This document shows, in pieces, positions 1,290 to 44,020 of a DNA stretch of 64,000 nucleotides. Source of the stretch: Epiperipatus broadwayi (lineage: Eukaryota > Animalia > Onychophora). The position numbers and the translations under genes are program-made. Location of the stretch: the NCBI GenBank assembly GCA_028023455.1, contig JAQFVV010000007.1:3658001-3722000 (forward strand). The letters run 5' to 3'. Numbering within the stretch: position 1 is the stretch's first letter; every line of letters begins with the position of its first letter. The notes below the pieces were generated by a model. It made no database searches, was not told the origin of the DNA, and saw only the letters and a list, made by a program, of their open reading frames with translations.

Positions 1290-4200
1290 TATTAAAAAAA
1301 ATTAAATTTCTCTCATGACCATGGTTTCATCTATTCACAAATAAATCTTGTGAAATCCAACTACAAACAGACAATTTATATATACACTAAACAGAAATAT
1401 TTGCACATAATTCACTTCAAAAACCACACACTTTAATATCAAAAGATGTTTTTATGAGATTGATGGCCTCAAATTCAAAAAGATTTATTGTCAGAGTTTC
1501 TTTAACTTTGCTGTTTGTTTGTTTGTTTTTTCATAAAAGGCCTGTATTCAGTTCATGAGTATACAATACTAAGTTAAGATACCTATTTTTAATTCTATTC
1601 TTATGAACTTTAATTCTTCCATTGAGATTTATTTTACTTTTACCTATATAAACTTCAAGGAATCTTATAAACTGTGCCAGGAATAGACTTTATTAATCAA
1701 CTGTTTTGAAGTATTTAATAAATTTAAATCAAGACCTTTCTACCAAGCAGCTTTCATACCACCTAATAAATGAATGTTTTTATAAACCAATCTATAAACT
1801 GATGACTTAAATGATTAAAAAATAAATTCTATTTTCACTAACAATTAAATTTTAATTAATATCAGATATAAAATATTTTTATTAAATATAATATTCATTA
1901 ATAAATTCATGATTATAATCCAATTCAATATAATCAGAAGCAAATTGACTCCTTTAAATACAAGCATTCTTTTCAAAATTAAGGCTTATATTCTTATAAC
2001 AAATGTTTAATAAAGAAAGCTTATGAGTAAAAGTTTTGATAACTGTCAGGTCTTATCATTTCATAAATTTTTATGTTTAATAAAATGATTACAAAATAAA
2101 ATATTATCAAACTTATTAACACTTAAATCCAAAAATTTAACAAACCAAATGTACCTCCCTCAATAGTAAAATTAATATTAGAATCAAATGCATTCAATCT
2201 ATCTGAATAACAAATAAACAATCAACAGATCTAATGAATAATTTTCAATATGCAGAAAATGATTAATACTCATCATCATCATCATCAAGCATTATCAATC
2301 CACGGCAGAATGAAGGTTCAATCCATCTCCGATTTTTAGCTTTTCTTCTCCACATAACCCCTGCACACTATCTTATTTCATCCATCCATCTCACATGTGG
2401 TTTCTTTCTGGATCTTTTACAATCTCTTGGAATCCAGTTTAAGATTTCAATTGTCCATCTATTTTCATTCCTTCTAGCAATATGTCAGCTCAATTCCACT
2501 TCAGTCTTTTAATTTTTTCAATGAGGTTAGTAACACCTGTTTGTTCTCTTACCCATATATAGGATTGCATTTTCAATCTCTTCTTACTTCCAATATGCAT
2601 TTCTCCGTATTTCTTTGAATGATCTGAAGACTCTGTATTGCTCTTCTATTATGTGTCCAAGTCTCAGATCCATAAGTAAGAAATAGTAAAACACATTTAT
2701 TAGACACCTTCCTTTTCAAACACATGGGCATATTTCCGTTTAGTATCAAGTTATTTCTATCGCCAAGTTTAATTCTATTATTAATTTCATCCATTATGTT
2801 TCCATCTGTATTAACAAATTGACTAAGGTATTTGTAGCTGTTAACTTCTTCTAACTCATCATAATCAATCTTTATTTTCATATTTTGAGAAAATCCATTA
2901 AACATTACTTTAGTCTTTTTAACATTTATCTTTTGTCTTACTTTCCTACTTTCATCTGATAACTCCTGCAACATTTCCTGCAGCTCTAAAGCATTATTTG
3001 CAAAAACAATTATATCATTGTAAAATCTAAATGACTTAAATAATCTCCATTTACTTTCACTCCTTTAGCTTCCCATTTTAATCCACAAAATACTTCTTGC
3101 AGCACTGCTGTAAAACGTTTTGGAGATATAGAGTCACCCTGTCTTACACCTTTTTCAATGTTGACTTTCCTAGTATCATTATGTAATCTAATTGTTGCTA
3201 TTGCATTTTTATAAATATTCTTTAAAATATGACAATATCCTGGAGCCATACCTCGATGACCCAATGCTTTAATCACTGAAGAAATGCTCATAGAATCAAA
3301 TGCCTTTTCATAATTTACAAATCCAAAGCATAATGGCAACTCATATTCATTTGCCCTTTCTACAACTTCTCTCAATAACTGGATATGATCTACTGTACTA
3401 AAATCACTTTTAAATCCAACTTGTTCTCTTGGTTGTGGAAATCCAATGTTCTCTGTAGACGAGTTGTAATTATCTTGGTAAAAACTTTGTATAAAACTGA
3501 TAAAAGGCTGATAGGTCTGTAATTTCTAATATCTTCTTTATCACCTTTTTTAAATATTAATATTAATACTGCATTCTTCCAATCATCTGGTATATCTTTA
3601 TCATTTAGACAATTGGTATATAACTTTGCTTAAAAAAATTCTATTTCTTCACCTGCTTCTTTTAATATATCAATTATAATTTCATCATTACCTGGAGCCT
3701 TTCCTTTCTTCATATATTTAATTGCATGTCTCACTTCTTCATTTAAAATTCTGGGCAATTACTGCTCTCTAAAAAAATAATATAGTCAGAGCACATTAAA
3801 AAAGAAATAACAATCAATAATCCTTTCCTCTTTAATCTTATAAAACACATTGTTGCACAAAGTACATTGAATTCTCTCAACAATAACAAATCATGAATAA
3901 CTTGTATCTTATCTGCAAAAAAAAAATATTAATTTCCCTAAAATAGAAAGAAATATATTAATACTATTTAATCTATCAGCAAATTAATAGATATTTTCAA
4001 TATTTACACTATCTAATAAATAAATGCCTCAAAAGAAGAACAGAGATAAAATTGAACCAAAACTAATATAATTTGTAAAAATCTTACAAGAAATTTTGAA
4101 ATTTTATTAACAATTCCCACCATCCACCCCCACCCAATAAAATCAAAAATATACCTAAAAAAAAAATTATCTTTACAAGACTTAAGATTAAAAAAAGTTT

Positions 4201-4440
4201 AGGAGTCAAATAATTGCTAGGATAACAATTTAAAAAAAACTTTATCAAAAAAAAATTGTATTTTCCATAATTTTCATAATACCAATCAATTTAGATTTTT
4301 TTTTATTAGGATCACAATTTAATACAAAATGCTTTCCATTATTTAGCACTAAAGACACTTTATTATTATTAAATGCTTTTATTTAAGTTACAATCTCTGT
4401 TTGTTGGTTTATTTGTTTGTTTGTAAACATTTTTACTTAG
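1290..4440 (-). mobile_element. Decayed Penelope-like element (RT + GIY-YIG remnant), interrupted by an RTE LINE
   Basis: Minus-strand remnants read SIPGTVYKIP..YIG..RIKVHK (GIY-YIG, ~1560-1700) and DRLNAFDSNINFTIEG (RT, ~2170-2230). Collinear with the copy at 11940-15030 on both sides of the RTE insertion. Carries gaaac-catg-gtc, the 3' half of a hammerhead, at 1313-1328. Confidence 0.75.
2270..3762 (-). mobile_element. 5'-truncated, frameshifted RTE-clade LINE
   Basis: ORF-track fragments 2573-2974 and 3010-3375 align to the intact RTE ORF at 4870-6447. The 3' end carries a (GAT)n tail at ~2270-2287. Possible diverged ~10-bp target duplication (gagcagtaat / gagtattaat on the minus strand). 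Confidence 0.93.
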
Positions 4441-4699
4441 ATCAGAATAAAATTTTAAAATAGATGTTTAATAGAATTAAATTTTAATATAATTTGTTGA
4501 AATTTGATAATTTCTTCTAAATCACCATCAACGGAATTTAGGTAGGTGACCTTGTTTCTTAGATCTGGTCCACAAGGTGGCAGAAATTTGGTATATTTTG
4601 CTATTAAAATTTGAAAGACATTTTTAGAACTTAAATATGTTTTAAGTAATGCATGCAGTTTTTTTGTTGGTTTCAATTGAAAGCTTGATTTAAGTTAGA

Positions 4700-6460
4700 A
4701 TAAAAGAGTTGAAAATGATATAAGAAAGTATAACTGTGAACTAGCAAGGAAAGCTGTAGAAGAAAATAAAAGTCTTAAGAATGTAAAACAACATTTTGGT
4801 ATTGGTAGGAAATTTATATCTGCAATAAGAAAAAAAGATGGAATTATTACTAAAAGGAGAGATGACATCATGAAATTGGTAGATTTTTATCAAGAATTAT
4901 ATAGTAATAAAGAACAAGTACCTCCTATATCTATTACATCTTCCAAATTGCCCAGAATTTTAAATGAAGAAGTGAGACATGCAATTAAATGTATGAAGAA
5001 AGGAAAGGCTCCAGGTAATGATGGAATTATAATTGATATATTAAAAGAAGCAGGTGAAGAAATAGAAAAAATTTTAGCAAAGTTATATACCAAATGTCTA
5101 AATGATAAAGATGTACCGGATGATTGGAAGAATGCAGTAATAATATTAATATTTAAAAAAGGTGATAAAGAAGATATAAGAAATTACAGACCTATCAGCC
5201 TTTTATCAGTTTTATATAAAATTTTTACCAAGATAATTACTACTCGTCTACAGAAAACATTGGATTTCCACCAACAAAGAGAACAAGCCGGATTTAAAAG
5301 TGGTTTTAGTACAGTAGATCATATCCAGGTATTGAGAGAAGTTATAGAAAGGACAAATGAATATGAGTTGCCATTATGCTTAGGATTTGTAGATTATGAA
5401 AAGGCATTTGATTCTATAAACATTTCTTCAGTGATTAAAGCATTGGATCATCAAGGTATAGATCCAGGATATTGTCATATTTTAAAGAATATTTATAAAA
5501 ATGCAACAGCAACAATTAGATTATATAATGACAATGGGAAAGTCAACATTGAGAAAGGTGTAAGACAAGGTGACTCCATATCTCCAAAACTTTTTACAGC
5601 AGTGCTGCAAGAAGTATTTTGTGGATTAAAATGGGAAACTAAAGGAGTGAAAGTAAATGGTGATTATTTAAGTCATTTAGATTTTGCAGATGATGTAGTT
5701 GTTTTTGCAAATAATGCTTCAGATCTGCAGGAAATGTTGCAGGAATTATCAGATGAAAGTAGGAAAGTAGGACTAAAGATAAATGTTAAAAAGACTAAAG
5801 TAATGTTTAATCGATTTGCTCAAAATATGAAAATAAAGATTGGTTATGATGAATTAGAAGAAGTTAACAGTTACAAATACCTTGGTCAGATTATTAATAC
5901 AGATGGAAACATAATGGAGGAAATTAATCATAGAATTAAACTTGGTTGGAGTACTTTTGGTAGACATAACTTGATACTAAAAGGAAATATGCCTATGTGT
6001 TTGAAAAGGAAGGTTTTTAACAAATGTGTTTTACCAGTTCTTACTTATGGATCTGAGACTTGGACACTTAATAGAAGAGCAATTCAGAGACTTCAGACCA
6101 CTCAAAGAAGTATGGAGAGATGTATGTTGGGAGTAACAAGAAGAGATCGTAAATGCAATGTATGGGTAAGAGAACAAACAGGTGTTACTGACCTCATTGA
6201 AAAAATTAAAAGATTGAAGTGGAGTTTGGCTGGACATATTGTTAGAAGAGATGATAATAGATGGACAATTGAAATTTTTAACTGGATTCCAAGAGATTGT
6301 AAAAGACCCAGAAAGAGACCACATGTGAGATGGATGGATGAAATAAAAAAGTGTGCAGGGGTGATGTGGAGAAGAGAAGCTAAAGATCAGAGAAGATGGA
6401 TTAAACTTGGAGAGACCTTCATCCTGCAGTGGATTGATAATGGTTGATAATAATAAAAAA
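4700..6460 (+). mobile_element. 5'-truncated young RTE-clade LINE
   Basis: Homology to the longer copy (19505 onward) starts at ~4700. Ends in ctgcagtggattgataatggttgataataata, the terminus shared with the other copies. Confidence 0.95.
4870..6447 (+). CDS. RTE-type reverse transcriptase ORF (525 aa, uninterrupted, lacks the endonuclease domain)
   Basis: Motifs GKAPGNDG, YRPISLL, EQAGF, FVDYEKAFDS, GVRQGDSISPKLF, FADD, YKYLG and the RTE C-terminal LTYGSETW...AGHIVRR...RPRKRPHVRW. Confidence 0.93.
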   Translation: MKLVDFYQELYSNKEQVPPISITSSKLPRILNEEVRHAIKCMKKGKAPGNDGIIIDILKEAGEEIEKILAKLYTKCLNDKDVPDDWKNAVIILIFKKGDKEDIRNYRPISLLSVLYKIFTKIITTRLQKTLDFHQQREQAGFKSGFSTVDHIQVLREVIERTNEYELPLCLGFVDYEKAFDSINISSVIKALDHQGIDPGYCHILKNIYKNATATIRLYNDNGKVNIEKGVRQGDSISPKLFTAVLQEVFCGLKWETKGVKVNGDYLSHLDFADDVVVFANNASDLQEMLQELSDESRKVGLKINVKKTKVMFNRFAQNMKIKIGYDELEEVNSYKYLGQIINTDGNIMEEINHRIKLGWSTFGRHNLILKGNMPMCLKRKVFNKCVLPVLTYGSETWTLNRRAIQRLQTTQRSMERCMLGVTRRDRKCNVWVREQTGVTDLIEKIKRLKWSLAGHIVRRDDNRWTIEIFNWIPRDCKRPRKRPHVRWMDEIKKCAGVMWRREAKDQRRWIKLGETFILQWIDNG

Positions 6461-6678
6461 ATAAAATTAGTTTAATATAATTTTCTTATGCTTTTTTTTT
6501 AAAAAAAAAAGTTTTCTAAGAAAAAAATGTCAAACACTTCAACAGAAAGAATGTCTTCATATTTTAAGCTACTTAATGATTTATTTTCTACATATATAAT
6601 TACTTACACATACTAAATATGATATACATAAGAAATACGTATATTGACTTAAATGTAGAACAATCTACTGATATATAT

Positions 6679-7867
6679 TGTAACGGAAATGAAAATTAAA
6701 TTGAGAAATCATTTGTAACAGAAATATAAAAATATCATGATTATTAATTATTAAAATATGCATTTGTAATCTGTCATTTGTAACAGTATGAATAATATTG
6801 TAATGATGAATGATAAAAAGGCTGTTAAAAGACTGTTACCTTTATAACTGATTACAATCTATATATATTGATGAATGATAAAATGATAGTTGCTATAATT
6901 CAATAACTAAATATAACATTATAGCCCGTTTGCAACTATCCTAAACATTAATTCTGTCACGCTTATAATGAAATAAATAAATTATCTCATTTCTCAACAC
7001 ATAAAATAATAAAATGACAATTAAAACTGTCATCATTAAAGATTTAAAATATTTAGATATTGGGGAAGTCATTTCAACAATAAAACATACTGGCCATTGT
7101 CATCAAATAAAATAATATTAAATATAGCAACTGAATAAAATTACCCACTGTGAGATTCCTGGAGTGCATTATGCTTATCTCCAATACTAGGTTCTTTTAA
7201 CAAAGAATACTTCCTATTCTTCTTTCCAACCATATAAGACCATTCATGGTCACACGCACACACTGGTGCTATTCACGATAACTTATAAAACATATTATAT
7301 AAAGTTAATATTATGAAGTTAGAAAGAAGAATAGGAAGTATTCTTTGTTAAAAGAACCTAGTATTGGAGATAAGCATAATGCACTCCAGGAATCTCACAG
7401 TGGGTAATTTTATTCAGTTACTATATTTAATATTATTTTATTTGATGACAATGGCCAGTATGTTTTATTGTTCAAATGACTTCCCCAATATCTAAATATT
7501 TTAAATCTTTAATGATGACAGTTTTAATTGTCATTTTATTATTTTGTGTTGAGAAATGAGATTATTTATTTATTTCATTATAAGCGTGACAGAATTAATG
7601 TTTAGGATAGTTGCAAATGGGCTATAATGTTATATTTAGTTATTGAATTATAGCAACTATCATTTTATCATTCATCAATATATATAGATTGTAATCAGTT
7701 ATAAAGGTAACAGTCTTTTAACAGCCTTTTTATCATTCATCATTACAATATTATTCATACTGTTACAAATGACAGATTACAAATGCATATTTTAATAATT
7801 AATAATCATGATATTTTTATATTTCTGTTACAAATGGTTTCTCAATTTAATTTTCATTTCCATTACA
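6679..7867. repeat. Palindromic unit 1A (arms ~550 bp, loop 87 nt)
   Basis: 6679-7230 is the reverse complement of 7318-7867 with few substitutions. Ends TGTAA...TTACA. Confidence 0.95.
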
Positions 7868-7869
7868 AA

Positions 7870-7891
7870 TGGCGCCCCACGTTGGGCACCA
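7870..7891 (-). promoter_or_regulatory. tRNA-Lys(CUU) primer-binding site inside a 22-nt near-palindromic linker
   Basis: Minus strand reads TGGTGCCCAACGTGGGGC, a 17/18 match to the canonical Lys1,2 PBS TGGCGCCCAACGTGGGGC. Plus strand reads TGGCGCCCCACGTTGGGC (16/18). Confidence 0.9.
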
Positions 7892-7893
7892 TT

Positions 7894-10800
7894 TGTAACT
7901 GAAAGAAATTATTAATTATTAAAATATATTTATAATCTGTCATTTCTAACAGTATGAATAAATAAAGATGAACTGACAAAAGGTTGATAAAAGACTGTTA
8001 CTTTTATAACTGATTACAATCTATATATTAATGAGTGATAAAATGATAGTTGCTATAATTCAATAACTAAACACTAAACAGGATATATGATATGCTCCAG
8101 CGGTTCATCATTTGTAACCAAGTAAAATTAAATAATAAATGAATTCACTGTGTTAGCTAAAATACAATTTATAATTAAATAAGGATGACGCTAACATATA
8201 AATAAGAATATATGCATATCATGCTCTATTTGGGTGTCTATTTTTAATTAATTAAATATAACATGATAGCCCATTTGCAACTATCCTAAACATTAATTCT
8301 GTTACGCTAATAATGAAATAAATAAATTATCTCATTTCTCCATATAAAATAACAACAATGAAAATTAAAACTATTATCATTAAAGATTTAGAATATTTAG
8401 ATATTGGGGAAGTCATTTGAACAATAAAACATACTGGCCATTGTCATCAAATAAAAGAATATTAAATACAGCAACTGAATAAAATTACCCACTGTGAGAT
8501 CCCTGGAGTGTATTTTGCTTATCTCCAATACTAGGTTCTTTTAACCAAGAATCCTTCTCATTCCTCTTTTTATGTATATACGACCATTCACGGTCACACG
8601 CACACACTGGTGCTATTTATAACAATGTATAAAATTATCATATAAACTTAATATCATTAAGTTGGAAAGGGATTAAATCACTCTTTATTCAGTTTAGCTA
8701 AGTACATATGTTTTCCCATGAGTGCCACTAGATTGTTTTAAATCTAGATAAATCTGTTTAGAGTGTACTGAGTTCAAACTCATTCGGTACATTTTTATTA
8801 CACATGACTTGGATGACTAATGAAAAAAATAAAAATGACATTCTTATATTTTATTCATGTCAATAAAATCATAAAATCCCCATATTACAAAATTTATATA
8901 GATCAAGACTCTTATAGACATTGCTAGCTCATTTTTCGTATATTGATGAACAGACAAGTATAATCTTATTAATGGCTTCTAAACAAGCATCGTGAAGACC
9001 ATTATTGATATTGATGGCCATTTAACTAGATTATTTATCACAATATAAAGGTAATAATGATGATGATAATAATGATGATGATGATGATATCACATTAATA
9101 ATGATAATAATAGTGATGATGATACCAGCCATAGCTTTATACTGAACTCACAACAATAAATTTATCTTTATAAACTTATAGGCATTTTTTAAAAATCATC
9201 CCTTGTCAAAATGGGATTTAATTATTACATTCACTAGCATTTATATAAGTTTATGTTTATTTACTAAAATACTTTGATAGTTAAAACTAGGATTTAATAA
9301 TACTAGTGATGATGACTGATCATCATGGATCTCTATGCATGATATTCAACTTTCTACAAATCCTTATTTAATAAATCATTAATAAATTATAATCATTAAA
9401 TCTAATGTTTAACATAATTAATATATTTAGTAAATAAGGATTTGTAGAAAGTTGAATATCATGCATAGAGTCCGTGATGATCAGTCATCATCACTAGTAT
9501 TATTAAATCCTAGTTTTAACTATCAAAGTATTTTAATAAATAAACATAAACTTATATAAATGCTAGTGAATGTAATAATTAAATCCCTTTTTGACAAGGG
9601 ATGATTTTTAAAAAATGCCTATAAGTTTATAAAGATAAATTTATTGTTGTGAGTTCAGTATAAAGCTATGGCTGGTATCATCATCACTATTATTATCATT
9701 ATTAATGTAATATCATCATCATCATCATTATTATCATCATCATTATTACCTTTATATTGTGATAAATAATCTAGTTAAATGGCCATCAATATCAATAATG
9801 GTCTTCACGATGCTTGTTTAGAAGCCATTAATAAGATTATCCTTGTCTGTTCATCAATATACGAAAAATGAGCTAGCAATGTCTATAAGAGTCTTGATCT
9901 ATATAAATTTTGTGATATGGGGATCTTATGATTTTATTGACATGAGTAAAATATAAGAATGTCATTTTTATTTTTTTCATTAGTCATCCAAGTCATGTGT
10001 AATAAAAATGTACCAAATGAGTTTGAACTCAGTACACTCTAAACAGATTTATCTAGATTTAAAACAATCTAGTGGCGCTCGTGGGAAAACACATGTACTT
10101 AGCTAAACTGAATAAAGAGTGATTTAATCCCTTTCCAACTTAATGATATTAAGTTTATATGATAATTTTATACGTTGTTATAAATAGCACCAGTGTGTGC
10201 GTGTGACCGTGAATGGTCGTATATACATAAAAAGAGGAATGAGAAGGATTCTTGGTTAAAAGAACCTAGTATTGGAGATAAGCGAAATACACTCCAGGGA
10301 TCTCACAGTGGGTAATTTTATTCGGTTGCTATATTTAATATTCTTTTATTTGATGACAATGGCCAGTATGTTTTATTGTTCAAATGACTTTCCCAATATC
10401 TAAATATTCTAAATCTTTAATGATAATAGTTTTAATTTTCATTGTTGTTATTTTATATGGAGAAATGAGATAATTTATTTATTTCATTATTAGTGTAACA
10501 GAATTAATGTTTAGGATAGTTGCAAACGGGCTATAATGTTATATTTAATTAATTAAAAATAAGACACCCAAATAGAGCATGATATGCATATATTCTTATT
10601 TATATGTTAGCGTCATCCTTATTTAATTATAAATTGTATTTTAGCTAACACAGTGAATTCATTTATTATTTAATTTTACTTGGTTACAAATGATGAACCG
10701 CTGGAGCATATCATATATCCTGTTTAGTGTTTCGTTATTGAATTATAGCAACTATCATTTTATCACTCATCAATATGTAGATTGTAATCAGTTATAAAAA

Positions 10801-10907
10801 TAACAGTCTTTTATCATCCTTTTGTCAGTTCATCTTTATTTATTCATACTGTTACAAATGACAGATTATAAATATATTTTAATAATTAATAATTTCTTTC
10901 AGTTACA
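7894..10907. repeat. Palindromic unit 1B (arms 1483 bp each, loop 48 nt)
   Basis: 7894-9376 is the reverse complement of 9425-10907. About 5 differences in the outer ~170 bp that I compared. Ends TGTAAC...GTTACA. Confidence 0.97.
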
Positions 10908-11939
10908 ATATATATATATATAAGCTGTGTCGAATTGACCTAAGTAAAATCATATATATTAATTGAAGTTTGTTTATGATATATTTTTGGTAACTATTTT
11001 TAAAAAAATTCCAATCAAAAGGAAAAATGTCAGACACTTAGTTTAAGTCAATGATTTATCATACACATATATAATTATGTAAACATAATCATTACAATTA
11101 TTGCAGAAAAACAGGGTAAAAAATTTATTCTAGAATTGCATATTAACTTATTTGCAGAAATATCTGATATATATCTAAACTATAAGTATCAAGTCGATTT
11201 AAAGTACAATAGTTTTATTTTCTGTATCAATACTAGAATGTTAAAAATAAAGAGATTAATTTTTTTTTAATGTTGTTTTTATTTACCATGCACTTAATAT
11301 TGTTTCTTCAACCATAATTGGGATTTTTAGATTTAACTTAAAATAAAAGTATGGAAAGTCCAGAAATTAATTATGGAAGAACGAGATCTGGGTCAGCTAA
11401 TAAAAATGAAAGTTACCAGTGAGTGCATAACAATATTTTTTAATAAATTTATCTCAGGTAAATCATGTTATATATTATTTTTCCATAATTTTAAGAGGAA
11501 TGCAAAGAAGCTGTCTATAAAAATGTGATTTTAATATTTAATTCTCAAAATTTAGGATTTGTGAACAAATATAAAAATAAACATTTTAAATGTGTTAAAA
11601 ATCTTAATTTTATTTTTTTTTTAAGTAATGACTATATTTTCTCAGGTTCATTATATTCCTTGATATTTGCTCTTTCTAATATGTGTTATATTATTATTAA
11701 TGTGTTCAAACTGAAGATATTATACAAATTGTACCTCAAGCTTGTCTAAAATCCAATATAGTGGCCTTCAAAAGTCAAGAAGTAGCAATATTAATATGTA
11801 ATTGATTTTATTTCTACTATTGAATGTTGTAGAAATATTCTCGATCATAATAAATTGTCTTCACAGGTAATTTTGAATACGCAATTACTTGAGAGAATAA
11901 AATTTGTTTTTGCCCGAAAAAGATCTTAAAAAAAAAAGA

Positions 11940-15030: not shown

Positions 15031-15072
15031 ATTTTTGTAGTTAATATTTTATGCTATAAGATTATGTGATAT

Positions 15073-15355
15073 ATGGATAAGAGAACAAACAGGTGTTACT
15101 GACATTGTTGAAAGAATTTAAAAGACTGAAATGGAGTTGGGCTGAACATTGCTAGAAGAGATTAAAATCTTAAACTGGATTCCAAGAGATTGTAAGGACC
15201 CAGAAAGAGACCACATGTGAGATGAATGGATGAAATAAGAAAGTGTGCAGGGGTGACGTGAAGAAGAGAAGCTAGAGATCGGAGAAGATGGATTATATTT
15301 GGAGAGACTTTCATCCTGCAATGGAATGATAATGGTTGACAATGATGATGATATG
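15073..15355 (+). mobile_element. RTE LINE 3' fragment
   Basis: Matches 6160-6460. Ends gataatggttgacaatgatgatgat. Confidence 0.9.
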
Positions 15356-17758: not shown

Positions 17759-19854
17759 TTGGCATATAATAGAATGAATAATTTTGGAAAGGAAAACGAT
17801 ACTGCAACAGCAACTGATAAATATAACAAATTCTTCAAATTGCTTTGAAAAAAAAAAAATAATAATAAATGAGGACGAAGCAGAATTGAAATGCTTTGGT
17901 GGGACGAAAACTTTAAATAAAATTACACTGGTAAAGCACTGAAATTCTATTAAAGAAAACATCTAATGTAATAAAAGATAATGATTTTCAAATAAATAAC
18001 TGTCTTAATCTCAAATGTTATAATATTTTGTTGATGGTTTTTATAAAAAAAAGCGATGTAGATCTAAAAAAAAACAAAAGAAATACAAATGAAGGATAAG
18101 ATTTGACTTACTAATCTTAATTAAAATGCATTTAATAAAATATATCAGAATGACTAATAAATTTGAAATAGAAGATATATAAGTAGATAACATTGGGTAC
18201 CAACATGCATTAGCCAGCACTGAGTTTATTGGCTTTTTACATCTGAGTTTAAGATCAAGAAACACAATGGTCTTTCTTCTCAATTGCTTGATAAGACAGA
18301 ATGAATGTAAAAAAAATTTCTAATAGATATTTACAATCATGACAGACAAAAATAAATCATGGCCCTTATTCCCAGGAGGGTATAAAGTCACCATCCAAGG
18401 CAGCAATTGATGGATGAAGGTGAATGATACTAACAATACCCTGACTGCGGACCCAGGCTGCCATTTGATGATAACTTTTTATTTTCATATCTACAACTTC
18501 CAATCACTTTCAATTGAAAAAAGATTGCAAAAATTGGAAGAACTGTCTCATATTAAATGGGACAATATTGGACTTTGTGAAGTTAGAAGAAAAGGTGAAG
18601 AGATGATTGATTTAAGAAGTGAACATGTTACTCTACTACAAAGGCACAAATATTAGAAAAACAAGTGTAGTAGGATTCATTATAAATATATTGTGAAGAT
18701 TGATGGTGTATCAGACAGAATGGCAAGATTAGTTATTCAATTTAATAGCAGATACCAAATGCAGATAATTCAGGTTTATGCCCCAACAAGTTTTCATAGT
18801 GATGAAGTAGTAGAGGATTTTTATATGGATGTACAAAAACATTTTGATCAGACTAAACAACATTTTAAAATTGTTGTGGGAGACTTTAATGTTAGAAATG
18901 GTAAACAATTTAAAGATGAATGTGCAGTAATTAAATTAGGTAGTTTGCAGAAAAAGAAAAACTTTATATTATGAACTTTATATTATGAATTCTTTTTTTA
19001 AGAAAAATGTTAAAATGACATGGACATGAAAGCATTCAAATGAAGGTATAGCAGAACTGAATTATATTTTGACTAACAGAAAATACATATTTCAAGATTG
19101 TAATGTTTTTAATAAATTCAACATAGGAGGTGATCATTGATTAGTGAGATATAAGATATGTGTTAATGCAAAACTAGAGATAAAAATTATTAAGAAAATC
19201 AATATTCACAGTTGATATTCCTAATCTTCAGAAACACTCTAATAAATTTAAATTAGAAATTGCAAATCGCTTTCGAATATTTACAGATTTTGAGCATGAT
19301 TCAGATTTGAATAAAATTAATAGGAAAATAAATAATATACTTTTAAAAAGTGCAACCAAGATAGCTGGTAGAAAAAAGCAGCAATTGACCAATAAAATTT
19401 CTACTGAGACTAGAGAATTTATGAAGAAAAGAAGGAATACAAAAAAATATATAAAAATGATACGTTAAGAAGAATAGAATATCTCAAATTTTATAAAACA
19501 GTGTGAAAAAGAGTTGATAATGATATAAGAAAGTATAATTGTGAACTAGCAAGGAAAGCTGTAGAAGAGAAATAAAAATCTCAAGAGTGTAAAACAACAT
19601 TTTGGTATTGGTAGGAAATATATATCTGCAATAAGAAAAAAAGATGGAACTAATTACTAAGAAGATGAATGATATTATAAAATTGGTAAAAGAGTTCTAT
19701 CAAGAATTATATAATAATAAAGAACAAGTATCTCCAACAACTATTATATCTTCTGAATTGCCCAGGATTTTAAATGAAGTGAGACATGCAATTAAATTTA
19801 TAAAGAAGGGAAAAGCTCCACCAGATAATGATGGAATTATAATCGATCTCTTAA

Positions 19855-21525: not shown

Positions 21526-24500
21526 TTAAAAGAAGCAGGTGGAAAAATAGACAAAATGTTGGTAAAGTTATATACCAAAGAATGCGTATTAATATTATTT
21601 AAAAAAAGTGATAAAGAAGATATTAAAAATTACAGACCTATCAGTCTTTTATCAGTTTATACAGAGAACTTTAGATTTCAACCAACCAAAAGAACAAGCT
21701 GGATTTAAAAGTGATTTAGTACAGTGGATTATATCTAAGAATTGAGAGAAGTTATAGAAAGAACCAATGAATATGAGTTGCCATTATGCTTTGGATTTGT
21801 AGATTATGAAAAGGCATTTGATTCTATAAGCATTTCCTCAATGATTAAAGCATTGGATTATCAAGGTATAGACCCAGGATATTGTCATATTCTGAAGAAT
21901 ATTTATAAAAATGCAACAGCAACAATTAGATTACATAATGATACTAGGAAAGTTAATATTGAGAAGGGCTTCCATATCTCCAAAACTTTTTACAGCAGTC
22001 CTGAAAGAAGTATTTTGTGGATTAAAATGGGAAGCTAAAGGAATAAAACTAAATGGAGATTATTTAAGTCATTTAGATTTTGCAAATAATGCTTCAGAGC
22101 TTCAGAAAATGTTGCAAGAGTTATCAGATGAAAGTAAGAAAGTAGGACTAAAGGTCAACATTAAAAAGACTAAAGTAATATTCAATGGATTTTCTCAAAA
22201 AATGAAAATAAAGATTGATAAATACCTTGGTCAGATTACTATAGATGGAAACATAATGGATGAAATTAATCATAGAATTAAACTTGGTTGGAGTGCTTTT
22301 GGTAGAAATAACTTAATATTAAAAGGAAATATCCCTATGTATTTGAAAAGGAAGGTTTTTAATAAATGTGTTTTATCATTTCTTACTTATAGATCTGTGA
22401 CTTAAACACTTAATAGAAGAGCAACACAGAGACTTCAGACCACTTAAAGAAGGATAGAGATGAATGTCAGGAGTAACTAGAAGAGATTGAAAATGCAATA
22501 CATGGATAAGAGAATAAACAGGTATTACTGACATCATTGAAAGAATTAAAAGACTGAAGTGGAGTTGGGTTGGACATACTGATAGAAGAAATGATAATAG
22601 ATGAACAATTGAAATATTAAATGGAATTCCAAGTGATTGTAAAAGACCCAGAAAGAGACCATATATAAGATGGATGGAAGAAATAAGAATGTGTGTAAGG
22701 GTGATGTGGAGAAGAGAGGCTAAAGATTGGAGATGGATTGAACTTGGAGAGACCTTCATATTGCAGTGAATTGATAATGGTTGACAATGATAATGATGAT
22801 AGAAATTGAGCAAATAACTAATTAATAACCAAAGAATTAACAGTTAGCTTCATTCTATCAAATTTGCTGGAGAATGTCAATGTAAGAAAATGTAACAAAA
22901 ATAATAAAAATATAGAAGAAAAAGGGATTAATCATAAAGTGTAAATTAATGATAGAAGAGGTAATAAAGTTGTTTTCATTTCAATGCTGATTTTAACCAA
23001 AGTTCTTGTCTGAATGATTTTACAGTTCACAATGTCAAACAGCCAAGTATTCCCCTACATTAATATGCAGAGAGGAAGACGGGGGGCTTTTGCAGTATCT
23101 TATAACTTAATACAATTTATTTCCACATTTCCTTGCACTGAGTATGATTGCTAAAATTTTTTTAAAAAGCTAAGATCACATCAAAAAATGCCACAAAAGT
23201 ATAAAATATATTGTATACCTAAGCATAATATTCATATATTATAGCATTCGCAAAAACTTACATTTTCATTACAATAAACATCTACGAGGTGTTGAACTAA
23301 ATTTATCTAGTCAACATTCTTTAATTATTTAAAATCAACTAAATTCAGAGGATTTTTTTTCAAACATTTGTGACACATATCTTAGACAACTTCATTATAG
23401 CTCCTGGAGGAGTCCAAAATCAGCGTGCAGTATTTTGACTTGCTAATTTAAACATAAATTTGCAAAAAGCCTGATAAATGAATAATAGAAAAGCCACTAC
23501 TTCTTCATAAACTGTGACAAAAATTAGCAATAGTAATTTTTATCATTTATGCAATGCAATTTATGATAATCTCAGATTTGCCATACATTTAAAAATTCAA
23601 CATTTAATAATGCTTTCCATTGATGATACAATTCAACCAATTCATTCAATGAAATTAATGATAGTAAATTATATAAAATTTGTATAGTTATCTAATTAAA
23701 ACCATATCATAGAATAATAAATTTTAAATGCCTCAAAACAATACAACAAAAGCAGTCTATTCACCTATTCCAAAAACTAAGTTACTACAAAAATTTCCAA
23801 AATAATATATTTTAAAAAAAGCTAAAATCATGAGGAAAACACAAAATATTGGTCCTCCATTTGTATCTTATTATAGGTATCCACTCTTCTAATGAACAAT
23901 ACTGAATATTATTGTTACATTAAGTCATTGTAATCGCTATCTTATCAAATCCTTATAAGGCAAATCGCTCAAAAACTGCTTCTATATTTTTTTTAGCACT
24001 TCATAATAACAAGAATGACCTTTTATTTCTTCTTTTTATTCAGTAATTAACATTTCAAGCCAAATGATTTTTGTAAATGTGCAATTGTGCTCATTTTATA
24101 ATAATCCAAATATTAATTCACTATGTAAAGGTTCAATTGCCATAACTGTCAAAACAGACCAAGAAAATATTTACCAAAATGAATCCTAATAAAATATCAT
24201 CCTTTACTCTAGTCCCTTTTTTGGTCTCAGCTAAAGCAATTAATAACTAGTTTGGGACTCGATCCATTCACCTCGGATACAACAGTAATGATAGTTTGCA
24301 ATATTATTTTTTTTAAAAAGTATATTTTTAGTCAAATATTTTCTTTAATTCTACCTTGCATTCTGATCATCATCTCTGCTTCCATATTACCAATAACATT
24401 CCACAAATATTCTATCTTCAAATTCTTTTCAATAATTTAACTTTATAATTACAAATCTTGCTATGAAAATTGAATTTATACTGATACTCCATGAACATTC

Positions 24501-28900: not shown

Positions 28901-30716
28901 TTTGTCCATATCTATATAGGTTAATGACTTTAAATTCCATGTATGAAACAGATGGTTCTGAATCTGCTGACAAGACTTCAAATTTATCAAATAAGATCAA
29001 ATCCAGATGACTTTATTATCAAATTTGGAAAATAAATTTGTTTGCAACCTCACAAGAAATTAACTTTTATGTCTTTGTCCTTCAGTTACAAATACTTGGT
29101 TGAATATCCAGAAATGGATCTTGATTTGAAATGAGTCTTCAATGGAGAGACTATATTGTGAATTATTGTCAAGTCCATTGTGCTTAAATGTTTCTGTACA
29201 TTTTTTGTAAGGCAAATTCTGTTTCTAATATCTGGTGAAGAATTATGTGAAAGAATTGGAAACCATTTCAAAGCATAGATTTGAGAGTAACAACAGTACT
29301 AGGTCTCATGAGAATATGTCAATATTTGATTGAACATACAAAAGTTTAATGTGGCACTTTTTTTTCAAAGAGGAATGCAGTATTCACCAATAAAATATAC
29401 TAGATCTAAATAGTGTCTGCAAACTTTCCAAGATTATTTCTACAATTATTTAAAATCTAATTTTAGATGAATAAAGAAAATGAATTGGGCAATGATCCAA
29501 GGATTATTCTAAATAATATGGGGAAGTTTTGTGTTCCAATTTATTTTTGCAGAAGAGTGTAGATTTTCAATCTTGACAAATTCAGAGAATTTTCTATTTA
29601 TGGAAAGTATTTCTTTTAAGAAGTCTGCTACATCCATTTACAATTCTTTAAAATTATTAGAATGATGTGTGCAAATAATAAATGTAATAAAAAATAATGT
29701 AAGTAAACAGATGAAAAGTTGATCTGCTAATAGAATTTAAAGCAATTAAAATGCTTCTGTAATTATTGTCGTAGTAATGCATGATTAGAATGTGCTAATG
29801 GATTAGAAAACTATTAAAATATTCTGAAGAACATTGTATTATGCCATTGGCATATTTCTTTAAATAGCACTAGAGATAAGCAAACTACAATTATCATACC
29901 TATATAATTAGCACTAATATGAAATAATAGTAAATTAAAGAGACATTGATATTACTAATGGAAAAGTAATATACTATTCCATATCAGGTGTACTCCAAAA
30001 AATGTCAAAATATAATATCTTGAAATTTATGAGGCCTATCAGTATAAAATCAATGCTCAATATTTAAGCAAGATGGTGCTGCTGTTGCAGAGAAATCCAT
30101 TCTGTATGTAATAAATAGATTGCAGAGTCATGTATAGGTCATCCTGACTTTTATTACTTATGTTAAGTCCTTCAGCAAACCTATGATACTTAAGCCATGT
30201 AAATATAGATAAAATGTATTAATTTATCTTTAACATAGGATAAAATATTTATGTATTCCCATTTAACTTATATTACTTTTGTATATTATACGTATGCTAA
30301 TCTAATACAATCAGTGCCTTATCATGTATTTTGTTAAGAGTATTTAATTAACATGACTTTTGGAAATTAGTTAAGACTGTGGATATTAATTAGAGAAGTT
30401 AAGGCAAATGTGTTTAACCTTCCAATTAGATATAGCACAAAGAAATGTCATCAGCATAGATAAATTTTCTGCATTCCAGATCTAGAAGATCATTGATTAA
30501 TATATTAAATACAAAGAAAAGATGATTCTTACAGTAAACTGTTCAATAGAATTTTGTATTTTCTATGACTATTATTAGTCATTGAATTTTTCTATTGGAA
30601 ACAATTTTGTGAAGAAAATTAATGGTTTTCCTGCACTTTAAGGTTTTAAAAACTTTTAGATCACTTTTCTAAACAGAAACATAGACCAATAAAGATAACA
30701 GCTGTTTTTAAGTTAC

Positions 30717-32075
30717 TGTAATGCTACAGGGAAATATGGGGTCATACCTTGGGTGATGGTCACCAGTATATGAACATCAACAGTCCTAAATTGGTTAGAC
30801 ATTTGTAACTCTATAGAAAATTGGAGTTTAAACCATGAGTAATCTGAGAGAATTGTATTTTTATCCTCAAGTTAAAAAAAATCTCAAAAGGGATGAGCAT
30901 AATAGATTATTCTGAAAGATCAGCACAGCTACTATAAGTTTACCAGCACTACCCATAAGAATAAGAACTATTCAAAAGAAGTAATCATTCATCATCATGA
31001 ATGATTAACAATCAAAAATAAAACAATCAAACTTGTAACTGGATTTGAAATGGGTCTTCTGTAGACCAGGCTAACTATTGAGCATTTCCCAGCTTTGGCA
31101 ATTATTTAAACCATAGTTTGGATGCACAAACTTAAGTACTAATCCATAAGAATACAACCAAAATAAATAATGGGATATTAAAACCTCATTTTCAATGCTC
31201 TGGTCACTTAGTACCATTAATGTACTGGCCAACTATAAACTTAATTTCTAATAAAGACCAAACTAAATAAAATGTAGTGCATGGACTTTGAAGAATATCC
31301 TATTTGTGCCTACCCAGAAATCATCATCATTATAATTATCTGGATGCCCATACACTAAATATAAACCCCCTATATATATCCAGCCATTATATATGAATCT
31401 ATCTCAGAAGAACACAAGCTCTATTACTTTTAGGTGACTAAGAGATGATGCAAAACAATTTTTAACAATTGAAATACAAGTTTATTAACAAAAATAAAAA
31501 TGATATTAAGGTCTCTAGAATATGGCTCTACAATTAGAAATTAAGTTTATAGTTGAGCAGTACATTAATGGTACTAAGTGTCCTGAACATTGATGATGAT
31601 CAGCAGGTTTTAATATTCCAGCATTATTATTTTTTGGTTATATTCTTATAGATTAGTGCTTAAGTTTGTGCATCCAAACTATGGTTTAAATAATTGCCCA
31701 AGCTGGAAAAAGTTCAATAGTTACCTTGGTCTACAGATCTATTTCAAATCCAGTCACAAAATTGACTGTTGATTTATTTTTAATTTCTAATCATTCATGT
31801 TGATGAATGGTTATTTCTTTTTGAATATCTATACTTTTGGGTAGTGCTGGTGAACTTATAGTTAGCTGCGCCAATCTCTCAGAGTGATCTATTATGCTCA
31901 TTCCTTTTGAGAGTTTTTTAAACTGAGGATAAAAATACAATTCCTCAGATCCCTTATGATTTAAACCCCAATTTTCTGTATAGATATAAATGGCTAACCA
32001 ATTTAGGGTAGTTGATATTCACATACTGGTGACCATCACCTGAAATACGACCTAGTATTTCCCTGTAGCATTACA
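30717..32075. repeat. Palindromic unit 2A (arms ~540 bp, loop ~280 nt)
   Basis: 30717-31252 is the inverse of 31533-32075, roughly 80% identical by eye. The terminal 20 nt tgtaatgctacagggaaata match exactly. Confidence 0.92.
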
Positions 32076-32077
32076 AT

Positions 32078-32099
32078 TGATGCCCCACATTAGGCACCA
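32078..32099 (-). promoter_or_regulatory. Decayed tRNA-Lys PBS linker
   Basis: Same 22-nt length as 7870-7891 and 18/22 identical to it. All differences are transitions, two of them at CpG. Confidence 0.8.
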
Positions 32100-32101
32100 A
32101 T

Positions 32102-32857
32102 TGTAATGGAATGGGGACATCAAGGTGGTGATAGTTTTAGTGAACTTGGGGTGATGGCAAAGCATTATCTCTCAAGTAAATTAAATTTAAAATGAAAAAT
32201 CAAATTAATTATTAAAGAAATCTTTAAAACCATAAAATATATAAGAATTTTATATATTATAAAAGAGCATGAGAACATGAAATCTCTCAGACAGATCATC
32301 CAGTTACTCCTTAGACTAATTGTAAATATAATTATACATCACTCAGCATTATCAATAAGTAATGGTAAGTATATATAATCAATTTAATGAGCCATCTTGA
32401 TTTTCTTTATGAATGAGCAAAACTGTGGATGGCTCATTAAATTGGTGGTTCATTCACCCATCTACCTGGTAGATCTTTCCAGTAGTCACACACTCATCTC
32501 AAAGATTAAGCCATGCATGTTATAGTACTTGCCTTTCTTTACGAATGAGCGAAACTACAGATGGCTCATTAAATTGATTACTTATACTTAATTTTTACTT
32601 ATTGATAATGCTGGGTGATGTATAATTATACCTACAATTGCTCTAAGGAATAACTAGCTGATCTGTCTGAAAGATTTCATGTTCTAAAGCTCTTTTGTAA
32701 TATAAAAAATTCTTATATATTTTGTGATTTTAAACATTACTTTAATAATTAATTTGATATTTCATTTTAAATTTAATTTACTTGGGAGTGATGATGATTT
32801 CCCATCACCCTAGGTTCACTAAAACTATCACCATCCTGATACCCCCAGCCCATTACA
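32102..32857. repeat. Palindromic unit 2B (arms ~297 bp, loop ~160 nt)
   Basis: 32102-32398 is the inverse of 32559-32857. Ends TGTAATGG...CCATTACA. Confidence 0.92.
32463..32574 (+). pseudogene. 18S rRNA 5'-end fragment (nt 1 to ~110), with a second partial copy at 32402-32445
   Basis: tacctggtagatctttccagtagtc...tctcaaagattaagccatgcatgt...gcgaaact...atggctcattaaat matches the conserved eukaryotic 18S 5' end. Confidence 0.9.
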
Positions 32858-33550
32858 TTATGTTAAAACCTTTTTTATTTTTAAGTTATTAAAGATAAAA
32901 TTTGTTCACAGTAGCTTTTTCCTGTCATATATCCTGCCTTTTCTAAACATATATTTGTAAAAGTTTTAGTAATATGATTTTTTCAAACAGTTCTAGGGAA
33001 AATGTAAGAATGATATAGTTTTGCTTTTATGCAAAATTTTTAGAATAGTTCCTATATGAATAATATTTTTCCAAACACACTTGGTTCTAAAAGTATGCTT
33101 TTTATTCCTGAGGATTTTTCTGATTTAAGACATTTGAGAACAAGTTCTTAACAGATTGCTATTAGAGGAAAAGAAGCTTGCAGTTCCACACTGATGAAGA
33201 TTTTTTTATCAATCAATATTGAGTTAGAATTCAGATATATGAGACTGAAAGCCTCATTAGTGATGCCAATAGTAGTCTTGTTTTTTTTTTCTAACTAAAG
33301 TGACTAAGCTTTTCAGCTAGATCTTGTAAAGTTCTTGTTTTTTATAATTCCATTTTTCTTTTCTAGCATCACATACTGATTTAATAAGTTTGTCAGCAAT
33401 TTTTTGATCTTTGATGACAAATATTGGCTACAAAGATTATTTTAGATTATTTTCAACCTGGAATGTATTTTTTATATATATACTTGAAGAATGGTCTCTT
33501 TGGCTATTGTTGTTATGAGTATATTAAACCTTTTATATATAAAAAGAACT

Positions 33551-43900: not shown

Positions 43901-44020
43901 TGCTAAGCGTTAGTGGTCGAGAGGTAAGCACAGCTGCCTTAAAAGCAGTTGTCTTGGGTTAGCTGGTTCGCTAAGCGGGTTCATTTCTCGTCCAACGCTA
44001 TGACACATGAGAAAAAAAAA
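43901..44020 (+). mobile_element. tRNA-Gly(TCC)-derived retrocopy or SINE with A-tail and 15-bp TSD
   Basis: gcgttagtggt..agaggtaagcacagctgccttaaaagcagttg...ccaacgc aligns with eukaryotic tRNA-Gly(TCC). The anticodon now reads TAA and the T arm has a ~21-nt insertion. aaatcattaagtatt occurs at 43886-43900 and 44018-44032. Confidence 0.8.

Follow-up and report, generated by a model that had tools for sequence, protein, structure and literature searches.

The DNA examined is a 64,000-nt stretch of the Epiperipatus broadwayi genome (GCA_028023455.1, contig JAQFVV010000007.1, positions 3,658,001-3,722,000 of the forward strand), here called the window, and coordinates given without a locus name are those of the window. 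At 7860-7901 it reads ...CCATTACA-AA-TGGCGCCCCACGTTGGGCACCA-TT-TGTAACTG..., the central 22 nt (7870-7891) forming a linker between two palindromic units. The original prediction that we followed up had given the linker as 7868-7893, an interval that includes both 2-nt spacers; its observation of a 22-nt linker between palindromes is real and is confirmed here. Unit A on the left (6679-7867) and unit B on the right (7894-10907) are arranged around the linker as -> <- [22] -> <-. Each is palindromic with an arm complementarity of 96-98%, and the arms of unit A are ~90% similar to those of unit B. The features of this first composite (6675-10911) are as follows.

6675-6678, no strand: candidate left target-site duplication, ATAT; ATAT stands beside both ends, and the surrounding (AT)n would allow lengths of 4, 6 or 8.
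6679-7226, plus strand: outer arm of unit A, the putative first-made cDNA strand, beginning TGTAAC; ~40 scored parent copies (of 1734 candidates) are colinear with 7150-7326.
7227-7321, plus strand: loop of unit A, colinear with the parent LTR; parents match through 7326.
7322-7867, plus strand: inner arm of unit A, the putative snap-back copy, with a GTTACA-like end (CATTACA); parents match solely on the opposite strand.
7868-7869, plus strand: spacer AA, the dinucleotide separating LTR end from primer-binding site (PBS), from the window sequence.
7870-7891, no strand: 22-nt double PBS, two inverted tRNA-Lys(CUU) copies with a 14-nt overlap, from sequence, genome-wide recurrence and pairing prediction.
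7892-7893, plus strand: spacer TT, the mirror of AA, from the window sequence.
7894-9371, minus strand: inner arm of unit B, the putative snap-back copy; complementarity is perfect from 9370/9431 outward.
9372-9429, minus strand: loop of unit B, with a 5-nt microhomology (9372-9376 / 9425-9429); parents are colinear from the right arm to 9375.
9430-10907, minus strand: outer arm of unit B, the putative first-made strand (minus strand from 10907), with end CAGTTACA; parents are 97-98% identical over 9375-9570.
10908-10911, no strand: candidate right target-site duplication, ATAT, from the flank sequence.

The fold-back microhomology of unit A likewise measures 5 nt (GAAAG at 7322-7326 against CTTTC at 7222-7226). 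Unit A also carries an internal GTTACA-AA-TGG 35 nt short of its true end (7826-7867, 6679-6720), and the end of unit B is the equivalent of this internal site, which may reflect another LTR lengthened beyond a former PBS. Relative to unit A, an insertion of ~170-185 nt is present in both arms of unit B (8072-8237, 10564-10729) and must therefore be older than the fold-back. The B arms further contain mirrored (TGA/TAA)n microsatellite-like tracts (9043-9125, 9677-9757), at which read contigs break; reads over 6600-11000 gave short unitigs of high-copy repeat only, with depth over the linker bin and no bridging record. An assembly artefact was ruled out, the arms having diverged by 2-17% and the junction being recurrent. 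Neither window composite contains an ORF of at least 180 aa. The window has a single long ORF, an intact 525-aa LINE-type RT ORF at 4870-6447 (RVT_1, E = 4e-37); it is separated by 230 nt from the first composite, which follows downstream and to which it is unrelated. Degenerate LINE-type RT copies are found at 2317-3758 (minus strand), 15059-15336, 19677-19853 and 21526-22781, and a 95-nt tRNA-Leu(TAA)-like sequence at 43906-44000 (ARAGORN) may represent either the head of a SINE or a gene with an intron.

The linker is built from two 18-nt PBSs for tRNA-Lys(CUU) in opposite orientation that overlap by 14 nt. Its minus strand reads TGGtGCCCAACGTGGGGC and agrees with the Lys(CUU) PBS at 17/18 positions, while the first 18 nt of its plus strand are the mirror PBS copy, matching at 16/18 and showing both expected core mismatches. 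The length predicted from such an overlap is borne out by the arithmetic (18 + 18 - 14 = 22), and the sequence likewise confirms the make-up proposed for the linker, with symmetric 2-nt spacers at two loci (AA/TT here, AT/AT at the second). Even with 3 mismatches allowed, the window holds no further copy of the intact 22-mer, and shuffled sequences give an expectation of 0. A host tRNA PBS placed 0-4 nt beyond an LTR end is indeed what is found at 7870-7891, and the TTACA-AA-PBS arrangement of the window units is the commonest normal one genome-wide, its full form being TTACA-AA-PBS-TCGAAATAAG. One could instead imagine that the linker is a retro-copied 22-nt 3' fragment of the tRNA, or part of a tRNA-derived SINE, for its final 18 nt are the same as the 3' end of the tRNA, CCA included; yet its first four bases are TGGC where the tRNA has TCGA, many normal PBSs extend as ...GGGGCTCGAA, and no tRNA body is present, which leaves this origin with practically no probability.

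A tRNA-type 3' end, GGTTCGAGCCCCACGTTGGGCG, with discriminator G is found at 19 loci of the genome, and the 3' half of human tRNA-LysCUU is identical to the GGTTCGAGCCCCACGTTGGGCG end (PMC12140204). The foamy-virus PBS has the same sequence (PMC3386198). Both copies in the window have A at the discriminator position, for which the original prediction had required either CpG decay twice or a variant tRNA. Since G occurs in the tRNA loci and on both sides in 41/50 listed linkers, the A in the window is a CpG transition and not the mark of a variant tRNA.

A second, older composite in the window has the same layout, with unlike palindromes flanking a decayed 22-mer that reads, with its spacers, AT-TGATGCCCCACATTAGGCACCA-AT (32076-32101). 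Its features are listed below.

30713-30716, no strand: left duplication, TTAC; the right copy, TTAT, is a 3/4 match, and the insertion is old.
30717-32075, plus strand: unit 2A, a palindrome of outer arm, loop (31253-31532) and inner arm; 7712 parent candidates, colinear with 31100-31539/46.
32076-32101, no strand: spacer AT, decayed 22-nt double PBS (32078-32099) and spacer AT; differs from the intact 22-mer by transitions, mostly CpG.
32102-32857, minus strand: unit 2B, a palindrome; left and right units are without similarity.
32463-32576, plus strand: 18S rRNA nt 1 to ~114, at the apex of 2B and sense on the plus strand; Rfam RF01960, E = 1.4e-21, matching from model position 1.
32858-32861, no strand: right duplication, TTAT, from the flank sequence.

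The apex of unit 2B identifies one of the templates. An Rfam search of 30500-33100 gave no 18S match, and the rRNA was detected once the short stretch was scanned alone. The fragment is antisense relative to the outer-arm cDNA strand of 2B, followed from the outer end to the apex. A second partial 18S copy lies at 32396-32444, accompanied by a perfect 17-nt snap-back stem (32380-32396 / 32428-32444). The break at nt 1 of the mature rRNA points to run-off of a reverse transcriptase from an RNA template, and the apex of 2B is, to judge from its sequence, copied from RNA in the orientation of a cDNA run-off. Chimeric retrocopies offer a parallel in that their cDNA switches to an abundant cellular RNA and runs off its 5' end; they have been described mainly for LINE machinery, whereas here the switch would sit inside a tRNA-primed LTR-type cDNA. 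In an empty-site search the LINE flanks to the left and right of the second composite matched different genomic copies, and no duplication was confirmed.

If each unit arose by snap-back of a cDNA, the first strand should begin at the outer end of the unit, cross the loop, fold back, and finish beside the linker by copying the tRNA. The parent families allow this polarity to be read. For unit A (1734 candidates, 94-98% identity) each scored parent copy is colinear with 7150-7326 and the inner arm is matched on the other strand only; for unit B the parents (97-98% identity) are colinear from the outer, right arm to 9375; and for unit 2A (7712 candidates) they are colinear with the outer arm and the entire 280-nt loop, to 31539-31546. 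With the rRNA in 2B, all four window units (A, B, 2A and 2B) agree in what appears to be snap-back cDNA polarity, as had been expected. In each, as in self-primed strong-stop DNA, the first strand would start from the PBS-proximal LTR end and the fold-back copy end by copying the primer. Among the best-scoring copies of the parent families, none shares the fold-back junction of A or that of 2A. The apex of unit B has one other genomic copy (G000:C1389:2997-3331, 90% identity, both strands), and contig C1389 carries no intact 22-mer among the listed sites. The parents of A and B occur in pairs 6.9-7.8 kb apart in the same orientation and are therefore LTRs of full-length elements. Both units of the first composite come from LTR families that are ordinary, high in copy number and equipped with single PBSs.

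To see whether the junction recurs we searched the whole genome (5.6 Gb). The pattern TGGYGCCCNACGTNGGGCRCCA was found at 79 sites; its reversed control gave 0, and chance alone would give ~0.001-0.04. The looser pattern TGGCGCCC-N{0,30}-GGGCGCCA was found at 116 sites, against 0 for its control. Linker length is essentially invariant, or nearly so. The variable lengths that the original prediction had named as evidence against itself did not appear: 46/50 listed linkers measure 22 nt, 2/50 measure 21 nt through a 1-nt deletion, and 2/50 are unrelated. A further 20 loci in the genome have the 22-mer between LTR-like ends, which represent at least 12 flank families. Some of these are plain inverted pairs (L018, L019/20, L023, L029, L021 and L034) with arms of 0.7-1.8 kb that start with TG and end near the PBS, and L033 has a full hairpin on the left side of the 22-mer. 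Unrelated partners are joined in the second window composite and in L017, L022, L024, L028, L030 and L035. The unequal units and unrelated partners that had been foreseen are present in the window itself, where A differs from B and 2A is unrelated to 2B. Across 49 eukaryotic sites examined the usual form is ...CA plus 1-4 nt, the 22-mer, then 1-4 nt plus TG....

Some of these loci have peculiarities of their own. The site at L033:3987-5562 lies in (AT)n; its left hairpin is formed on a natural stem of 9 bp closed by a loop of 8 nt, and its right unit is a half unit that stops exactly past the hairpin, without a matching duplication. In L027 (4990-5100) the 22-mer is followed by 41 nt of the partner, GGCGCCA and the same 41 nt again, a repeat that looks like the result of jumping back to the linker as template and copying anew. 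In the X/Y family the LTRs (L022:4930-5200, L024:4930-5090, L028:4930-5100) contain a remnant PBS of 8 nt, TGGCGCCC, 44-53 nt short of the 3' end, with GGGCGCCA mirrored near the 5' end, and it looks as if these LTRs had absorbed an older PBS or 22-nt junction.

Besides this genome, 27 eukaryote-like contigs from JGI metagenomes contain the exact 22-mer between flanks of the same type, two of them (L037 and L046) with hairpin units, and the phenomenon therefore extends beyond this genome. One metagenome contig with the 22-mer bears an Rtf1-type gene. No ORF that would name a superfamily was found in L017, L031, L035 or the larger metagenome contigs. Six other metagenome contigs of GC 0.62-0.66 (L036, L038, L042, L043, L053 and L068) contain the perfect palindrome TGGCGCCCCACGTGGGGCGCCA in a conserved context, without LTR-like flanks; they are probably bacterial and unrelated.

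The regularity of these junctions bears on the proposal that they arose in host DNA, either through independent head-to-head LTR insertions fused by recombination or through replication fold-back at the PBS quasi-palindrome, the arms being host-made. Fold-back replication can yield long palindromes, and the PBS core is a quasi-palindrome. Such an origin is nonetheless very improbable given a junction of 22 nt in nearly all listed sites (79-116 sites), the symmetric spacers and TG..CA outer ends, the consistent polarity of all four units, the meeting of unrelated families at the same 22 nt, and an apical 18S that starts exactly at nt 1, which is an RNA end and not a feature of rDNA.

The properties of the PBS itself suggest how the junction could form at the level of cDNA. 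For the PBS 18-mer, DNA parameters predict a homodimer of -15 kcal/mol that involves precisely the 3' 14 nt and contains two mismatches; neither 3' end stays free, and TGGC remains available as the template for GCCA. The claim that PBS tails would anneal through the core is thus matched by the predicted 14-nt 3'-terminal self-pairing. No 3'-end self-pairing is predicted for the Lys3, Pro or Trp PBSs (used as controls only), and Lys3-type PBSs occur at 0 sites in this genome. Ordinary single PBSs are far commoner than double ones: the core is found at 1335 sites and TTACA-NN-PBS at 201 sites genome-wide, and doubles make up 4/100 listed.

The mismatched core makes a further prediction, that repair of a two-mismatch heteroduplex should give four core outcomes, and all four are observed. 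The 50 listed cores comprise 44 of the A..G or C..T type, 5 A..T and 1 C..G. Mosaic cores show a modest excess when compared with transversions at the four central bases (Fisher p = 0.04). L017 and L035 have the core in opposite orientation. Hence both of the orientations that had been expected to occur are seen, together with mosaics. These cores also speak to a variant in which one plus strand with a PBS end folds back by means of its own GCCC/GGGC stem and serves as its own template, with no second molecule. This would produce the same 22 nt and could account for the perfectly symmetric sites L019/20, L029 and L054; the symmetric L029, however, has a mosaic A..T core that requires a heteroduplex, and the window composites join unlike units (A with B; 2A with the unrelated 2B), which refutes a one-molecule origin for the window and makes it hardly credible as a general account.

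The outer ends of both composites resemble those of integrated LTR-type DNA. TG...CA termini are present (TGTAAC...GTTACA in the first, TGTAATG...CATTACA in the second), both composites begin TGTAA and finish TTACA, and the 2-nt spacers are kept at the inner junction and missing from the outer ends. The candidate 4-bp duplications are weak, ATAT being palindromic and within (AT)n, and TTAC and TTAT being one base apart. The proposal that the ends were ready for integrase is consistent with the TG...CA termini, and the candidate duplications are ATAT/ATAT in (AT)n at one locus and a 3/4 match at the other. Four composites (the first window composite, L018:3425/6588, L023:3327/6643 and L033:3987) lie in (AT)n with ATAT at both ends, reflecting either a target preference or a palindromic duplication.

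The window composites do not have a direct LTR pair, their units being inverted or palindromic, and no polypurine tract (PPT) adjoins any of the units. The composites are therefore derivative products and not canonical elements. A canonical element is available for comparison in the same genome, namely L017, which possesses a PPT and is flanked by a clean duplication of 4 bp (AAAG/AAAG). The predicted absence of a PPT holds for the window units and does not generalize, as many sites are plain LTR pairs for which PPT-primed plus-strand strong-stop DNA is the best account, and some junctions lie within normal elements that have a PPT, such as L017.

Several established classes share some of these features. 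TRIM, SMART and LARD elements are likewise non-coding, with TG..CA ends, a tRNA PBS and short duplications, but they have direct terminal repeats and a PPT, whereas the window composites lack both and each unit is palindromic; TRIM/SMART membership was rejected on the ground that there are no direct terminal repeats around a PBS and PPT. DIRS1-like elements are likewise retroelements with inverted terminal repeats, but they use a tyrosine recombinase, contain an internal complementary region, lack a tRNA PBS and show no duplication, traits that do not apply here; DIRS-like membership was rejected for the lack of an ORF of at least 180 aa and the presence of a tRNA PBS. Foldback elements and palindromic MITEs have comparable long inverted arms and are DNA transposons without a PBS junction, colinearity with an LTR parent or rRNA run-off. 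They were set aside here, where an rRNA 5'-end run-off lies at the apex and the arms come from LTRs.

The original prediction went further and saw in the linker the replication strategy of a new type of element. On this account a self-propagating, PPT-independent class of retroelement would transcribe its palindromic unit, prime it at the bidirectional PBS, snap it back and re-dimerise it in each cycle. Inheritance of the 22-nt junction is seen in at least two families (L017/L035 with 95% identity across the junction, L022/L024/L028 with 86-88%), and such inheritance means that the 79-116 sites are not all independent events. The flipped core between L017 and L035 suggests re-priming of the site, and the apex of B has its second copy. 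Against this, neither the A nor the 2A fold-back junction recurs in the best-scoring copies of families that number 1,700-7,700 candidates, and the units are 94-98% identical to ordinary single-PBS parents. L017 and L035 carry the junction inside a normal LTR-PBS...PPT-LTR element, and a family with direct LTRs, a PPT and a 4-bp duplication is one that replicates normally. We consider a new class decidedly unlikely, and the claim is not supported for the first composite, whose parents are ordinary high-copy single-PBS elements and whose fold-back junctions have no other copy or one. The window composites look like one-off by-products.

Taken together, we favour, with a probability of about 0.78, the reading that at the linker two products of aberrant reverse transcription are joined, both stemming from ordinary LTR retrotransposons primed by tRNA-Lys(CUU). 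To this extent the central mechanism of the original prediction is supported. The reading builds on features legible in the DNA, from the make-up and recurrence of the junction to arm polarity, the template RNA and the families of the parents. Under this reading a tRNA-primed minus-strand cDNA would extend upstream from the PBS, skip the normal first jump, and fold back at its 3' end on a microhomology of 5-14 nt, having in one case switched to 18S rRNA before folding. Self-copying to its own 5' end and through 18 nt of the attached tRNA would then give a hairpin with a 3' PBS tail. The last 14 nt of the tail being nearly self-complementary, two tails could pair with two G.A mismatches, and each paired 3' end would be extended through its partner. 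The product would be palindrome-22 nt-palindrome with two U5-type ends (..CA plus 2 nt), which integrase would trim before inserting the molecule with a 4-bp duplication. The hairpins and the dimer as physical molecules, and the part played by integrase, are what we infer from these sequences. Plain LTR->22<-LTR sites could arise similarly if two PPT-primed plus-strand strong-stop DNAs paired at their PBS ends. The arms of unit B, at ~1.48 kb, are long for R-U5 and count against this reading.

The proposed steps have precedents in known systems. Self-priming of strong-stop DNA is well known in vitro (PMC6088434). In HIV-1, cTAR self-primed minus-strand strong-stop DNA is similarly a tRNA-primed cDNA that folds at its 3' end and copies itself, a dead end for first strand transfer (PMC6088434). 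It was seen in reconstituted reactions and reported as not detected in endogenous reactions (PMC6088434). The Epiperipatus products, by comparison, seem to have gone on to completion through the copied tRNA, to have been joined two by two and to have become fixed in a germline. The pairing step recalls second strand transfer, in which the plus strand also ends in an 18-nt tRNA copy and pairs through that end. The normal transfer pairs it with the minus-strand PBS over the 18-nt site, whereas here two plus-sense ends would pair over 14 nt to give 22 nt and an inverted dimer. Parvovirus rolling-hairpin replication likewise yields -> <- -> <- concatemers by hairpin-primed strand displacement; the analogy is one of geometry only, the polymerase, template and junction being different. 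A literature search of partial coverage found no earlier description of such junctions.

A more speculative extension, which we regard as unlikely without being far-fetched, is that hairpin dimers with a bidirectional tRNA-Lys PBS seed, or are, self-propagating non-autonomous retroelements that could be primed from either strand with no need of a PPT. Such dimers would be the ancestors of L017/L035, of L022/L024/L028 and of the LTRs that hold absorbed PBS remnants, and the multi-kb palindromes could serve as sources of hairpin RNA against the parent family.

On the favoured reading, of two aberrant products joined at their PBS tails, the site would be a sequence fossil of the in vivo self-priming of tRNA-primed strong-stop cDNA, a process known mainly in vitro. 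It would equally be a fossil of two plus-strand ends mispairing via the quasi-palindromic tRNA-Lys(CUU)/Lys1,2 PBS. The same failure is predicted for other retroelements primed by this tRNA, and the 22-nt diagnostic motif would provide a search key for such events in any genome, including composites otherwise liable to annotation as foldback DNA transposons. The reading would imply that DNA bearing either two U5-type ends or two U3-type ends is a possible substrate for insertion by integrase. It would also supply one origin of perfect palindromes of up to 3 kb, which can destabilise DNA and give hairpin RNA.
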